A stretch of DNA of 63,069 nt, filler included, from Reticulomyxa filosa (lineage: Eukaryota > Protista > Foraminifera): assembly GCA_000512085.1 (NCBI GenBank). It is 21 parts of 21 records of this genome, joined end to end, with 100 filler letters (N's around TTAATTAATTAA, not from the genome) between each part and the next. Parts side by side here need not be neighbours in the genome. Positions count along the whole stretch, not along the records: positions 1 to 7,062 come from ASPP01014012.1; 20 more parts are not named here. One strand, 5' to 3'. Under the pieces are notes generated by a model that did not search any database, was not told where the DNA came from, and saw only the letters and a program-made list of their open reading frames with translations. The first letter of the stretch is position 1, and the number at the start of each line of letters is the position of its first letter. This document shows, in pieces, positions 1 to 7,062 of this stretch. The position numbers were made by a program, and so were the translations under genes.

Positions 1-1
1 C

Positions 2-3000
2 TTATGGTACGCGTGCACATTTGCGGAAGAAAACAAAGAACACAATTTCATTGATATGTTAGAGAGGTTTCGAGGGAAATATATAATTGATTGGGAATTT
101 CAATACAAAGACAGAACGGTATTGATTTATTTTTTATTTTTATTTTTATTTTTTTTTGGAAAAACAAAAAAAAGTTGTTTTTATAAGGTATACGTATATA
201 AATCAAGGCCTACGTAGTGCGTATAATAACACATATTACACGTACGTATATATGATATAAATAAAATGGGGGGGGGGGGAAAAAAAAAAGTATGACTTGT
301 TAAGTCATTTGGTCTGTCCATTGAGTGCGAACAACGTGAAGTGCGTACGGTATTTGCTGCAATCCGAGGTGCGCAATGACGTTAGTGAGGCGTCATTAGA
401 CAGGGCGTTGAATGTGGCGGTAGTGTTCCAAAACGAAAAGTGCATAAAGATATTGATGAGCGACAAGTACTTGGAAGAGAACAAGAAGTTGATGCGAGAT
501 TATTCGTTGCGACATTGGAAAGAGAAAAGCAAAGCAGAGCTGTTTTTGTATTATCTGCAGAGAGAGCTGTCAGAAGAAAAGTGCGTGGAGACAATGAACA
601 ACTTGTGTCACGTGATGAAAACGATGGTGAACGATCGCAAGATGATTAGCTGCGACTTTTATAATGTGTGTTACATTTACGACAAGCCGCAAATGTGGCA
701 AGTGATGTATGAAAAATGTCGTGACTTGTTGAACGTGTCCACGTTGTATAAGAAGCCCAATGACTGGCAATGGCTCAAAGAATACCTCGTGCACAACCGA
801 GACTTGCTATTGTGGCTGGACCCATTGGAAGACAGAGACATGCGGCACAAGTCTACGACAACGATCAAAGGACAGAGTACCGACGATCATACGTCCACGG
901 AAGACACGATTGCCGGCGAGCAGGACGTATCCTCGCCACAATTGGCGCCGTTGGTACTGCTCAAGTCAGACACGATCCACGACGAAGGCAAAGTGGAGGA
1001 TACGCGTCCCGCCGTAGAGGTGCAAATAGAAGAAAAGAAAGTGCAGCTTTCCAAAACCAAAACGCTGCCCAATATCTTTGCCGAAGAAAAAGTCGTGGAA
1101 AAGAAAAACATTTGGCTGCAATGGCATGCCATCAAAGAACTCTGCGAAGAGGAGGCCGCCAAAGAAAGCAAAGTGCTGCAAGAAACGCTGCTCAAAGATA
1201 TCAACGCCAATGAGCTAACATACAAACAAATCTGCGAGTTTGAATGCAACGACATTATCAACTCGAAATACATTGGCGACCAAAACAAACGCAAACTGCG
1301 CCAAGACAAAACCAAGTTTGGCTTGAAGTCTACCGTCAAAGAAAAGGAATTAGCTCAAATGAGCATTCGTAGCAGTGACCATACTGCGAATGCAAAGCAT
1401 ACCTATGATTTTGTTTTATATGTATGTATATATATGTTGTTTTGTTTTGTTTTTTTTTTTTAAAAAAATTAAATAAATAACAATATATAATATATGTATA
1501 TTGTTCTCATTCATTTCGAATACGTATACTTATCAATGACAATCCTCTTCCCCCTTTTTCAAAGCTGAACCAATTGCTAACACGTGCCCGTAACATGGAC
1601 GAAGGGTTCCAATCCAAAATGCGGGAGATCTTTCGCGAATGCAAGGGCTGCAAGTTTACAAGTGGGCATGTGAAGTCGTACGAACGTTCGAAAGTGAAGG
1701 CGCAAATTGAGTATGCAAACGAGGCGTTTCCAAAGTCAGCGCATATTGTAGATGTGGTTCGTTGCTCTGCTACGTTTGACGGAATTGAAGATTTGAAAAA
1801 CGGCTTGAATCACTTTAAGCGCATTATCGTGAAGAGCAATGGGATATTTGAAGTAATGCGTATGAAGAACGGATTTGCTCAAAAACCAAAATCCTCTGGG
1901 GTCACTTTAGGTGGTCAAAAGAAGGACGAGCATAGTGACTCAAAAAAAAAAAAAAAAGAGTCGGTGCTACTGAGCGACACATTCCATTTGGAAATTCCAA
2001 GTGGCTATCAAGATGTCAAATTTAACGTGATTTACACGGAAATCACAGAAGGAGAGGGAAACAAAGAATCGATTGTCGGCGAAGTCCAGTTTCTATTGCG
2101 ATCGATTGCGCGATGGAAAATGAAGGGACACAAAATGTATGAAATAAGTCGACAAGCGCCATTTATAAACGGCTGCTATGACCAACTTTGTGTGAACGAC
2201 TTTGATTTCCAACTCAAACTTAGTGGCTTCAACCACAACTCATTGTCGAAGCTCATGCTCTACTTCCCATTAAAGTTCCGCGAAAGCAAATACATTTTGA
2301 ATGAAAAAGACGCCGACGGCGACAACTTTGTCTCCAAAATTGCATTCAACAGCAAGGTTAAATATAATTGCTTGAAAGAGTTATTGGGTGATGGCGATCT
2401 CATTCCCACCGATGTCGTTCAAGAACAGCTTCTCGAAAAAAATCAAAATGGGGATTACCCCCTCATGTTCGCTCTTTGGAAGCAATCCTCCATTGAAGCC
2501 ATTCACTTGTTCATCCCTTCTTTCCTCGCTAATCCTACCGAATTTTGGCATTGTGTCAATAAAGTTTATTTATTTATTTATTTTTTTTTATGATTGAGGG
2601 AAAATGGAAAATGTTTAATAACATATATGCATATATAATATATATTATTATATATGTATATATGTTATTAAAGTTCGATATGCCATTGCTAGATTACGCA
2701 TTGAGGAACACTTTAATTGATGTTTCATCCTCATTGAAATTGTTGAAAGAAAATATTGATGAGAGCAAATGGAATGAATTCATCGTCACTCAAGAAACTT
2801 GGGTTTGTGATTTTAATATACATATACACTCATACAAAAAAAAAAAGCTTTTGCTAACCATGTCTGTCGTGTTTATTGCTAAACGGATGTATGTGCGTAT
2901 GTGGCGTTGTGCAGAAAGGCTTGATTCCTTTGATGAGGGCCGTAATGGAGCAATCCAATTTGACTGCAGAAATTGTGGAGACACTCATTCCTAAGAATTA

Positions 3001-3882
3001 TCAAGAATATGCCATTCTTTGGGAAGTCACTGAATCATGGGTAAAACAATAAAGTCATTTTTTTTTTTTCACAACGTCTTCGTTTGACTACGTTGCAATT
3101 GACTTAAAAAAAAAAAAAAAAAAAGGAAGAGTCTACATTGCTGCACTTGGTATTTACAAACTCAAAACCGAAAGTGGAAGAGCGCCTTAAAGTCCTTCAG
3201 GCATTTGTTCCTTTAGAGATATGGCAGCGATTACTTCTCTGCAGAAACAAAGTTTTTTAATATAATTTTGTGCACAGGGTACATTTGCGTATGTGTGCGT
3301 ATACGTTGTTGTAAACTTGCAATTAAAATGTTTGTGCGTATATGTCTCTTGCTCTATTTCCCTTCCTTTACAACTTTTTATTCATCTAGCATGGAATGAC
3401 TCCATTGATGGCGGCAGTGTTCTTGTCCCCTGAAATAAACGAAACGATTATGTCGATGCTAATTCCCGAACATATCAAATATGGAAAGGATAACAACTTT
3501 TGGAAAAACACTGTAGTTTCGTATGCGTTGTGTTGTTTGTTTTGACTTACGATCACAATACCCTTTACTAAAAAAAAAAAACAACAGATCAAAAACATCG
3601 ACAATGGAAGCAATATAATCCATTTGTGTATTATCAATAAAACTGGAAATGATGTCAGCCGGCTGCAATGCTTGCGTGAACATGTACCTCCGAATATCTG
3701 GAATGAATTGATAATGCGCGCTAATACCACACAGGTAATTCTCCTTTTTTTTTGCTTTGTCACTTCTGATTTGTTGAAGCTTTGGTTGTTCTTGCGTAAA
3801 GTTAAAAGAAACTCCGATCGTCACTGCCCAACGGCTGAAAAAACCTGAAGCTCTTCTCTCACTCTTGTCAAAAAGGAAATAA
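2..3882 (+). CDS. Ankyrin-repeat protein with central RelA/SpoT-like (alarmone synthetase-type) nucleotidyltransferase domain; 5' partial, 9 exons
   Basis: Exons 2-118, 291-1421, 1565-2563, 2674-2802, 2915-3040, 3126-3251, 3390-3512, 3588-3734 and 3802-3882 join in frame via GT-AG introns. Motifs HVKSYERSKVK, DVVRC, RMKNGF, GYQDVKFN, GEVQF and GHKMYE lie at ~1660-2160. Ankyrin-like units include GDYPLMFAL, GLIPLMRAV, STLLHLVF, GMTPLMAAV and GSNIIHLCI. Confidence 0.8.
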
Positions 3883-4987
3883 AATGAAATGTAGGCATCT
3901 TTGGCTTACACCACAAAAAAAAGCAACAAACCATACATTGTATGTTTTTTTCCCCTTTGCAATGAGTTTCAAGCGTTCAGTCTGTTTTTGTTTGACGTTG
4001 TAAAATTGCTTTTTCTTGGGGTTTTGTGTATTCCTCCTTGGTTTTGGACATAAAATTTTTTCATTGGTATGTTGACATTTAAATGGTTCTTGTCTTAGTT
4101 GTTATAATATTGAAAGCATTTGAAATTCTTTTCTTATCATCTTTTTTCTCGTCTTATTAGATTCGCTATTAAAAAAATTATTTTTTGCTGTCTGTTGGAA
4201 ATTAGATCAAAGCTGTGGCCATTAATGTTTATTTAGGCATGCAATGAAACCAAAACGAAAATTATAGATTTTTTTATCAAACACCTTGTCGCCTTCACAA
4301 TCTTTAAGATTCAAGAATCTTTAGTCAAGAAGATTAGCTTTAAATTCTGTCTAAACTCTACGAAATTTAGTTTAAGTACATTGGCAGTCTTGCGAAGGAC
4401 TGTTGAAAATTTGTAGGATTTTTAACACTAGCAAAAGACGCCGAGAACACAATCAGAAAGACAAACACAAAATTCTTTCTTTATTTTGTCTGTCTCTGTT
4501 TGCAAATGTTGAGGTCGTTATTTTTTCATCCTCTATCAAAAAGTAGCATATCAACTAAATTATCAGTACTTCTGAAGATAAAATATTGAAGAATTTGACA
4601 GAAGTGGAGATTATGACAACAAAGATCACAAGGATACAATATAGCAAACGTTTTTGGGCCTGCGATCTACTATTTTCACACAGTTTAAGATAGCACTCCA
4701 TTGCCAATAAAATCTTCGGCAAAAAAAGCGCTTAAAATAGGAGAGACGTACAAAACAACAAAGAACAAAATGTTGATCGATTTTAGAGATTGTGATTGTG
4801 CATATTCAAGAAGTAGAGATTGTAGAATCTCATTTGCATACGTATACGTTATAAATTTGAACTGTCCTCTGTGCACAAAACCAACTTTATTTCCCCTTGG
4901 TCTTGAAATTGAGCTTTTCAAAACAAAACAAACCAAAAGAAGAACACCACAAAGAAAGTAATTTAAATCAACACCAAAATTGAATGA

Positions 4988-6636
4988 TCAAGAAGGTGAC
5001 AGGCAAAGAGATTTTTTCTTTTTGGCTTGTAGTACAATCAATCGGGCATTCCGTGTTTGTCCATCTCTAAAATCCCGCAAATCAGTGGTAATTTTTTCAT
5101 CCAATATTTTCGTAAAAATACAGCGCTTTGTATACAACTTCAATTCACTAACAAATTCTAATCGTTTACTGCTGCTTCGGCTCGTCACAATCACAAAAAT
5201 TCCTGTATCAAACAAACATTTTTTTTTAAAATTCCAAATTCGAAGGAGAAAAAAAAATCTGTCTCGTACCGTTATCGTGTAAAACTCGGTGAATTTGTCT
5301 ACAAATCAAACAAACATCTTCAAAATTGTCAAATATAGGACTTTTGTGATGTGGATTTTTGGAAGTACTTTCATTTCCACAATCGACTGCATCCAGCACA
5401 CCTTTGTCTATGACAACCTAATTTCATAAAAAACTTTATGTATTGACTACAATTGCTTTTACAAAAAAAACAAACAAACAAACATCGAAAGAATTGTCTT
5501 GAAAATCCAAATTTCGAACATCTTGGCAATGATACTTGATACAGGTCTGCAAGCGGTGAATATTGTCTTGGAAGGTGTTAGGGAAAAGAGCGCTATCTCC
5601 AAATTTCTTTTTGTTCAGATTTTTGACCAGATCGATTCCACGATCACAAAAATCCACACAAGTAATATCATTATATTTGGAATGAATGACCAAATTGGAC
5701 GCTAGGTCACTAATGCCACAGCCAATTTCCAAAATGCGAATATCTTTATTGAGCCCAAACAATTCTCCCAATTTCGCTTCCAACATTGTGCGCATATCCT
5801 CATAGCGACAAAACCACTCAAAGTGTTGGCCATTTTCCTCATTGGAATTCGTATTACCGCCCACGGGCGAAGATGATCGAAGTGGATAATTTTGGTATAA
5901 GTGATCCCAATAGGCTTTGTCACAATAGCGCGCTTTGATTTCCCATTGCTGAGAGCTGGAGGATCCAGGAGCTGATGTTTCCGGTTTTGATGTTTTTCGT
6001 TTGTCATGAGAATTATTCTTGTTTTGCTTTTCATTGTCTTTTTCTGTTGTCATCACAGCCATAGAATCACTCTTATTCCCTGTGGACGCACCGCTCGGCC
6101 ATCCCAATAATGGTGTTGTTGCAATTGCTGCTGCTATGCCAGTGTTGGCTACTATGAACGAAGATAGCCCTTCCACATTACCATTGCCATTACCATTGCC
6201 ATTGCTATTTCCAGATTCGCTGTTATGATTGTTGCCATTCACACTAACATTGAGATTGACATTGACGTTGACATCAGGCTTATCGTCCATTGGACCAGTT
6301 GAGTCTTTCTTCAACTCCGTCAACTCTTTCTGGACTGCGTTGAGCAAATCTTCTAACTTGCTGAACTGCCGTTTTACTGGGTGTAGTGTTGGCCCTACCG
6401 ATTTTGATACCTTTTTATTTATTTATTTTTCCCCTTGTACAACATCGCATATACTTTTGTCACAATGTGAACATGGTTTCTTTGTTATATATGTATATTA
6501 TATATATATATATATATATGCGTATAAGTGTACATGTGTGTAAAGTACCTGTGAAGTGTCATAAATATTGGCTTGATTGGAACGGAAATCAAGTGTATTG
6601 TTTTCATTCATATGTGGTGATATCACTATCATGTAA

Positions 6637-6668
<32 letters not shown>

Positions 6669-7018
6669 TTATATATTTGTAATGAACAAAAAACAGGAAG
6701 TAAAAACTGTAAGAATTGGAATGAATGGGCGGGAAGAAAGTCGACGGCTCAAATTGCTTTGTCCAAAATTTGGAAACTGTCCCAATGGATTTGCGATGGA
6801 AATCGATGGAATTTAATTGCTGGAAATCGGCAACGCTGTCCCATTTGTTGAAACTCGCCTTGATCTGCTTCCATTGCTTTTTTATTTCTCTCAACTGTCT
6901 GCGTATCGATTTCAATTGTGCTGTTGTTGTTGTTGTTGTTGTTGACCACTGTGAAGCTGCTAGTCCATTATTGTCAGAATGGTCTGACGGGCTTGAAAAA
7001 GTATTTCTTTTATCCTAA
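4988..7018 (-). CDS. Class I SAM-dependent methyltransferase, EEF1AKMT4/METTL13-N-like; 5' partial, multi-exon
   Basis: YCDKAYWDHLY...FEWF, motif I ILEIGCG, ITCVDF and DVRNLDFQDNSFD. Splices to VVIDKGVLDAV...IHRVLHDNG and then IFVIVT, with the stop at 4988. Confidence 0.8.
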
Positions 7019-7062
7019 TTTTTTTTTTTTTTTTTTTTTTGATTTTTTTTTTTTTTTTTTTT

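Follow-up and report, generated by a model that had tools for sequence, protein, structure and literature searches.

A gene in the foraminifer Reticulomyxa filosa appears to encode a RelA/SpoT-homologue (RSH) synthetase domain set between two repeat arrays. It lies on a 63,069-nt stretch of R. filosa DNA (assembly GCA_000512085.1), here called the window, along which all positions are counted, and falls within the part at 1-7,062, taken from ASPP01014012.1. The predicted product would begin with ankyrin repeats, continue through a helical domain and the RSH synthetase, and end in about seven divergent ankyrin-like repeats. The best overall explanation, to which we give a probability of about 0.72, is a spliced ankyrin protein with an active pyrophosphokinase of the Apk1/EAS/RelV type that is regulated by its repeats.

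A first-pass annotation of this DNA had pointed to six RelA/SpoT-like motifs. All are present in the order it gave, in frame 2: HVKSYERSKVK at 1667-1699, DVVRC at 1751-1765, RMKNGF at 1859-1876, GYQDVKFN at 2003-2026, GEVQF at 2078-2092 and GHKMYE at 2126-2143. The domain is 100% identical to the NCBI hypothetical protein RFI_18122, and a low-complexity insert interrupts it at about 1890-1995. Domain residues are numbered from position 1565. In a 98-sequence family alignment K45, D63, R66, R99, K101, N102 and E173 are invariant, and K37, R41, Y148, D150, K152, N154, Q175, H189 and Y192 are 96-99% conserved. The mean column identity of these 98 domains is 27%, and the residues of the annotated motifs are, for the most part, the invariant ones, so the motifs are not chance resemblances.

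The residue set of a synthetase (SYNTH) domain is found as well: D63 and E173 at 100%, K37, R41 and K45 at 97-100%, Y148 at 97% and H189 at 96%. The acidic pair that the first-pass annotation looked to is therefore intact. This pair, the Syn1 basic residues, the Syn3 tyrosine and the Syn5 histidine align with those of RelV, Apk2, small alarmone synthetases (SAS) and Rel. In RSH enzymes an aspartate and a glutamate hold Mg, basic residues bind the ATP phosphates and the Syn3 tyrosine stacks on the acceptor base; pyrophosphate passes from ATP to the acceptor 3'-OH and AMP is released. The predicted Mg ligands here are D63 (1751) and E173 (2081), with K37, R41, K45, R66, R99 and K101 as predicted basic residues and Y148 as the predicted acceptor-loop tyrosine. 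All nine core residues are kept in 135 of 149 family domains, the R. filosa copy studied included.

Searches and folding were run exon by exon or with database proteins. Sequence searches of Pfam, NCBIfam and the PDB gave no match to the domain or to its alignment. The Pfam check proposed earlier thus came back empty: PF04607 did not exceed its gathering cut-off for the RFI_18122 domain or for 97 relatives. The structural check was positive. An AlphaFold2 model built from the family alignment has a predicted local distance difference test score (pLDDT) of 87.6 and a predicted template-modelling score (pTM) of 0.81. Its top 41 Foldseek matches at E<=0.001 were all RSH synthetases, the best at E 3e-6 with probability 1.0, and RelP, RelQ, YwaC, SaEAS and Tas1 were among them at E 3e-6 to 7e-4. 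The exhaustive VIA search gave Z scores of 13.4 for SaEAS, 13.3 for RelQ, 12.9 for YwaC, 12.5 for RelP, 11.6 for Rel, 10.6 for Tas1 and 10.2 for CapRel. Polymerase-beta-type proteins scored 9 and below, and cGLR and CdnE scored 6-7, the background level. Viral structure matches were phage RelA/SpoT and Tas1-labelled proteins; a PHROGs search and tblastn of the domain against phages gave no match. Judged by its predicted model, the domain at 1565-2203 is an RSH synthetase with a polymerase-beta-like SYNTH fold, as the first-pass annotation had proposed.

The branch of the RSH tree to which the domain belongs was then approached through bacterial sequences. In 401 Pseudomonadota genomes, a family profile picked out ten loci, spread over nine of the genomes, with E down to 7e-12. 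It matched nothing in 401 Actinomycetota-side or 401 Bacillota-side genomes, and a pattern scan of bacterial genomes with one family member gave no match. Six of the loci (L098 and L100-L104) are isolated genes of 257-260 aa with a hydrophobic N-terminus, and they read VKSxxRAxxK, DLAR, KNxF, SGYRDL, EVQLHL and K..H.LYE. These RelV-like bridge proteins reach only 23-28 bits against PF04607, whose cut-off is 27. On size, isolated gene, N-terminus, weak PF04607 score and the residue numbers of RelV, we take them as RelV/VpEAS-type. The size, isolated locus and hydrophobic N-terminus are as described for such proteins (PMC12691689). A RelV-like query also finds phage proteins fused to MuF and followed by a small gene and then a hydrolase, which is the Apk2 arrangement.

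Family-profile scores were 39-47 bits for the RelV-like proteins, 45 for a further Pseudomonadota protein (L099) and 8-25 for three MuF-type proteins; among canonical enzymes, 44 SAS stayed at or below 7.4 bits and 20 long RSH at or below 9. By hhalign the family matched RelV-like proteins at E 5e-15 and long RSH at 0.29. With a bridging profile, Tas1 was the first PDB match (E 3.9e-5), aligned over Syn1-Syn2 as PIKxxER..K...DY..DxxR. A 44-row tree, which held no Tas1 or SaEAS sequence, recovered the family as one clade (support 100/99) apart from the bacterial sequences. In this tree a branch with support 100/98 places the family, the RelV-like proteins, Apk2 and L099/L105 together on one side, and a larger quick tree is in agreement. 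The approximately unbiased (AU) test rejects joining the family to SAS (p 1.6e-5) or to long RSH (p 2.9e-4). Placing it as sister to RelV is not rejected (p 0.33). The trees were read without naming a donor or a direction of transfer.

Residue patterns lead to the same place. The family carries the clade signature DxxR, K[N/D]x[F/W], E[VL]Q-x-[HLN] and K..H..Y, and it has DxxR, KN, the loss of the SxH histidine and the loss of IRT in common with RelV and Apk2. Ahmad et al. (2025) grouped Apk1, Apk2, SaEAS, VpEAS/RelV, AaEAS and XopAD-type proteins, and gave the SaEAS active site as D121, R124, K154, N169, E182 and Q184 (PMC12691689). Of these, D121, R124, E182 and Q184 map to D63, R66, E173 and Q175, and K154 maps to R99 or K101. 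As far as sequence comparison reaches, the domain is thus shown to belong with the Apk1/EAS/RelV clade rather than with RelA/Rel, RelQ/RelP or plastid RSH, subject to a long-branch caveat.

Four points weigh against the best overall explanation. None of the 98 domains has a Pfam or NCBIfam RelA/SpoT match above noise. The Z scores tie, so structure does not separate SaEAS from RelQ. Both trees carry a warning that long branches are joined. Finally, residue 152 is lysine in 97% of the family where RelQ and Rel have histidine and SaEAS, Apk and most RelV have asparagine, and the invariant Asn154 is new; the acceptor site therefore differs from those of characterised enzymes. In an ungapped register Lys152 falls at SaEAS N169 and Apk1 N370, and lysine occurs there in some RelV-like proteins and uncharacterised Pseudomonadota matches too. 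A one-to-one pairing of Lys101 and Asn154 with SaEAS K154 and N169 was rejected, as the register is ambiguous.

The synthetase exon belongs to a gene of nine stop-free exons on the + strand, kept in frame by eight GT-AG introns of 67-172 nt with 14-35% GC, all in phase 0. The exons sum to 992 aa; the gene start is missing, as the contig edge cuts the 5' end. The features are as follows.

2..118, + strand: exon 1, 39 aa, stop-free, truncated at the contig edge, with a GT donor at 119
291..1421, + strand: exon 2, with the ankyrin part, the helical region and the first helix of the synthetase unit
291..473, + strand: about two ankyrin repeats in the first part of exon 2 (Ank_2 E 0.0011, below cut-off)
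474..1421, + strand: helical region, the rest of exon 2, family-specific; its last element is the synthetase unit's first helix
1565..2563, + strand: exon 3, with the synthetase domain, linker helices and the first two downstream repeats
1565..2203, + strand: RSH synthetase (SYNTH) domain of Apk1/EAS/RelV type, in exon 3
2204..2563, + strand: rest of exon 3, with linker helices followed by the first two repeats of the divergent ankyrin-like array; paralogues are collinear with it up to where the exon ends
2674..3734, + strand: exons 4-8 (2674-2802, 2915-3040, 3126-3251, 3390-3512 and 3588-3734), one ankyrin-like repeat of 41-49 aa per phase-0 exon
3802..3882, + strand: exon 9, 26 aa and a TAA stop, read from the sequence

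Comparison with paralogues supports this model. The end of exon 2 and the start of exon 3 are consecutive residues in four of them (370/371, 377/378, 465/466 and 331/332). Exon 1 matches the N-terminal parts of four paralogues (best E 7e-5), and exons 1 and 4-8 match paralogues singly and in the expected order. For exon 9, phmmer gave no match to the first 15 aa, and a similar RLKxP stretch stands in the last exon of paralogue locus L002, where the one-repeat-per-exon layout downstream can also be read. From the exon frames and paralogue collinearity we infer splicing at the RFI_18122 locus. The NCBI model RFI_18122 was rejected as the true protein: it starts inside exon 3, omits exons 1-2 and enters the intron after exon 4. 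The models RFI_18122, RFI_01368 and RFI_35231 split or shorten genes and read into introns, and at locus L001 upstream exons were apparently called as separate genes. Paralogue counts based on this annotation are therefore unreliable.

The introns also bear on whether the gene is a bacterial contaminant or a mis-assembled chimera. That the closest characterised relatives are bacterial and the assembly is fragmented speaks for this. The gene structure already contradicts it, with eight AT-rich GT-AG introns and an exon layout that recurs in a paralogue. The assembly also contains at least 14 paralogues, other foraminiferan datasets include further members, metagenome contigs carry eukaryotic genes beside the family's, and the family forms a clade of its own. 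Contamination or a chimera is very improbable; the first-pass annotation had argued against contamination from the introns.

The ankyrin flanks proposed earlier hold up in part. Upstream they are real but weak by sequence: residues 1-61 of the exon 2 model align to ankyrin proteins at Z 6-7, with a root-mean-square deviation (rmsd) of about 2. Downstream they are divergent. In a repeat alignment they alternate between two types with units longer than canonical ankyrin, and in RFI_18122 they give a marginal Pfam match (E 0.25); in paralogue RFI_35231 this region scores above the Ank_2 cut-off. At L002 1280-2290, in a paralogue whose enzyme domain is about 45% identical, each repeat likewise has a phase-0 exon to itself. 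One possibility is that such arrays could lengthen or shorten as exons are gained, lost or skipped.

Between the upstream ankyrins and the synthetase, most of the helical part is modelled with pLDDT >90. A disordered insert lies at about 855-1075, and pLDDT is <50 for residues 189-261. A near-invariant RQD motif at 1299-1307 stands about 25 aa before the synthetase and, in 119 of 131 members, at most 90 aa upstream of the domain. Against the PDB the helical region, modelled as part of exon 2, gave nothing at E<=0.001 or Z>=8, and no HD domain was among the matches listed. A reading of exon 2 as a pseudo-hydrolase was rejected for want of an HD match, with a degenerate HD possible given that same limit. 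On these models the helical RQD region is a candidate new regulatory domain.

The family is large. Against a library clustered at 50% identity, a profile made from four R. filosa sequences matched 867 representatives at E<=0.001 and 416 at 1e-10, with at least 14 R. filosa clusters taken as paralogues, which answers the call for a paralogue count. Taxonomy and architecture were drawn from the best 150 of the 867 matches. Among the 30 top matches looked up, all 15 that were named to species are foraminifera (R. filosa, Nonionella stella and Bolivina argentea). Metagenome members lie on contigs with eukaryotic neighbours (Ras, PPR and a GSK3-like kinase stretch). Comparison by features and structure brought up look-alike clusters, some of them labelled as diatom or ciliate; one cluster bears the automatic name RelA/SpoT domain-containing and another is 77% ankyrin. 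More distant relatives probably occur in other protists.

Ank_2 was matched in 64 of 103 longer members (62%), and the ankyrins lie before, after or on both sides of the synthetase domain, depending on the member. Among the families listed, Pfam gave no HD, PF04607, TGS, ACT or NACHT match in the 103 members, in keeping with the earlier remark that no HD domain is visible, for a gene whose 5' end is cut. Nor did these members show an NB-ARC, TIR or death-fold partner, or a secretion-system domain by Pfam. A hydrophobicity scan flagged 2 of 106 members, but it missed the RelV-like controls too, and the RFI_18122 N-terminus is missing. P0040 is a complete transcript-derived open reading frame with synthetase and ankyrin, so the fusion exists as mRNA in a relative. 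No antitoxin or hydrolase gene was seen at paralogue loci L001 and L152, and the downstream neighbour of RFI_18122 is a methyltransferase gene, while its upstream side lies past the contig edge.

Some members stand apart. P0011 (1573 aa) has two synthetase domains around an ankyrin array. P0024, P0034 and P0038 have lost several catalytic residues and look like pseudoenzymes. L151, an ENA metagenome contig of 50% GC, far from that of the foraminiferan loci, carries an intronless member of 1003 aa among dense genes with no Pfam matches. The name 'Ras GEF' on paralogue P0005 was rejected, as it has only ankyrin matches.

Given its fold and residues, and chemistry carried over from relatives, the domain is most likely an active 3'-pyrophosphokinase. 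In a Mg-dependent reaction it would transfer the beta-gamma pyrophosphate from ATP onto a purine nucleotide at the 3'-OH. It probably originated in the bacterial Apk1/EAS/RelV branch of toxic or exported synthetases, and it has multiplied in foraminifera. The repeats and helical domain probably restrain the enzyme until a trigger arrives, since its clade relatives work fast and poison a cytoplasm (PMC12691689) and neither a hydrolase nor an immunity gene was seen attached to it. Binding of a partner or ligand would then release the enzyme, making the protein a sensor and effector on one chain.

Clade products vary: ppApp for Apk1 and Apk2, ppGpp for VpEAS and AaEAS, and both for SaEAS (PMC12691689). 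With the acceptor residues also different, the sequence supports catalysis but cannot name the product. If the domain is active, (p)ppGpp is the leading candidate at slightly under even odds, (p)ppApp or a mixed product is a tentative second, and an RNA 3' end or another acceptor is unlikely. The first-pass annotation had read the altered motifs as a hint that the product is not ppGpp. The canonical residues do differ, but the pattern is largely the normal Apk1/EAS/RelV signature and so is not by itself evidence of such a product; RelV/VpEAS-type enzymes, which make (p)ppGpp only, are missing these canonical residues too (PMC12691689).

The output may serve to signal, to kill the cell itself or to attack bacteria that it has engulfed. 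A narrower version of the regulated-pyrophosphokinase reading is an effector for cell death or against prey. Here a sensed invader would set off a drain of ATP/ADP or GTP, at the very high rates of Apk1 and SaEAS, that kills a compartment, a cell region or an engulfed bacterium, rather than a tuned messenger. The nearest characterised relatives are toxins or toxic in the cytoplasm (PMC12691689; PMC3482391), the bacterial match L099 sits between a PAAR gene and an ImpA gene, the many paralogues with variable repeat arrays resemble immune-receptor families, and fungal NLRs use a RelA_SpoT effector (PMC4986451). Against these stand the lack of a NACHT, TIR or death-fold partner in 103 members and RelV-type relatives that are harmless in their native location, and we hold this version as speculative. 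Equally tentative is the broader proposal that foraminifera, and perhaps other protists, have a cytosolic ankyrin-receptor alarmone system, with dozens of receptors per genome, that uses a domesticated toxin-type synthetase to signal or kill. Sensing a target would then yield (p)ppApp, (p)ppGpp or a new 3'-pyrophosphorylated product.

Two other readings alter the chemistry. In one, improbable as we see it, the pyrophosphate goes to an RNA 3' end (tRNA CCA, like that used by CapRel, FaRel2 and PhRel) or to another non-standard substrate, and translation is blocked. Conserved D150, K152, N154 and R196, the RQD motif and the helical domain could enlarge a binding surface, and CapRel is a structural match at Z 10.2. 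It ranks below nucleotide-acceptor enzymes in both fold searches, however, and the sequence neighbours, RelV-like proteins and Apk2, have free nucleotides as known products. In the other, the domain has lost catalysis and serves an ankyrin adaptor by binding nucleotides or as a scaffold. Degenerate P0024, P0034 and P0038 and the missing Pfam RelA_SpoT match would suit this, but about 90% of domains with <50% mutual identity keep the catalytic set at a mean column identity of 27%, and the RFI_18122 copy keeps all of it, which makes a dead module very unlikely.

The first-pass annotation regarded the well-known eukaryotic RSHs as plastid enzymes, and this needs correcting, as non-plastid cases had been reported. 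RelA_SpoT domains are known as effector domains of fungal NLRs (PMC4986451), and divergent synthetases (divRel) were noted in Dictyostelium, ascomycetes/fungi and diatoms (PMC3153485). RelA/SpoT-like toxin domains in bacteria have been reported since 2012 (PMC3482391). A 2022 review states that eukaryotes outside plastids carry the hydrolase Mesh1 and no obvious synthetase, and names this as an open point (PMC10107265); a 2025 survey of the toxin/exported synthetase clade does not mention eukaryotes. Our literature search, which covered few subscription journals, turned up nothing published about this foraminiferan family, about RSH or ppGpp in foraminifera, or about Apk1/EAS-clade proteins in eukaryotes. 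There is thus precedent for a repeat sensor with an alarmone synthetase in a eukaryote, while the lineage, clade, architecture and scale seen here appear undescribed.

The sequences suggest that non-photosynthetic foraminifera may make their own (p)ppGpp- or (p)ppApp-type signals. If so, the foraminiferan system would be a plastid-independent eukaryotic alarmone pathway, parallel to but independent of fungal NLR-RelA_SpoT. The family also carries the toxin/exported synthetase clade into eukaryotic repeat proteins. Function is inferred and foraminifera are not genetically tractable; what the family offers is enzymes with which to test non-plastid alarmones, as it is large, goes unrecognised by Pfam and NCBIfam, keeps its catalytic residues by sequence and has expanded in a heterotrophic lineage.

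Several other genes were seen along the way. A convergent neighbour on the - strand at 5229-7014 (exons at about 6694-7014, 5478-6410 and 5229-5417) is a class I S-adenosylmethionine (SAM)-dependent methyltransferase (Methyltransf_11/25, E 8e-6) with a long N/G/S-rich N-terminal region. Its motifs resemble those of the EEF1AKMT4/METTL13 group, and it shows no sign of a link to the synthetase gene. In Pseudomonadota, L099 (1447-2565) encodes a 373 aa protein with no Pfam match and the family's YxD[IV]K motif; it follows DUF6931 and PAAR genes and precedes ImpA. By sequence and setting it is a candidate undescribed type VI alarmone-synthetase effector. L105 (1255-2439), L106 (1048-2469) and L107 (1258-2370) encode unannotated Pseudomonadota proteins of 371-474 aa that have no Pfam domain and weaker family-profile matches (19-28 bits).

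Among known systems, the RelV/VpEAS-type enzymes are the best relatives of the family profile by sequence in the bacteria searched. Both have DxxR in place of DxxGxR, KNxF, YxD, EVQ and K..H..Y; RelV is a stand-alone, Sec-exported protein of ~259 aa, whereas the family domain sits inside a spliced ankyrin protein of ~1000 aa with a helical domain. Relative to RelV, GP[VI]K, DYxxxxFP, DxxRC, YxD[IV]KxN and EVQFLL are specific to the family. By structure the best match is SaEAS, at Z 13.4 with an rmsd of 3.0 across 148 residues. With Apk1/Tas1 and Apk2 it shares the D, R, E and Q active-site residues of the family, but these enzymes have Asn in place of Lys152, and structural identity is 19%. 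Unlike Apk1, Apk2 and SaEAS, the family shows no secretion-system domain by Pfam, and no adjacent immunity or hydrolase gene was seen downstream of RFI_18122 or at L001 and L152.

RelQ/RelP, long RelA/SpoT/Rel and plastid RSH1-4 have the fold and the Asp/Glu pair in common with the family (Z 11.6-13.3). The family lacks the DxxGxR, GYxSxH and EQIRT of RelQ/RelP and long RSH, and also the HD, TGS and ACT matches of long RSH. The toxSAS- or cGAS-like logic once suggested survives in its first half, since the nearest characterised kin include toxic synthetases; the cGAS half falls away, as cGAS/CD-NTase folds match only at Z 6-7 against 13 for RSH. The fungal NLRs (PMC4986451) and divRel (PMC3153485) are, like the family, non-plastid eukaryotic RSH synthetases with no hydrolase, and the fungal NLR also joins its synthetase to a repeat sensor on one chain. 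They differ in having a PF04607 match and NACHT, whereas the family has neither and its domain is central between two repeat arrays; this separation from the fungal and Dictyostelium domains is drawn from their published descriptions.

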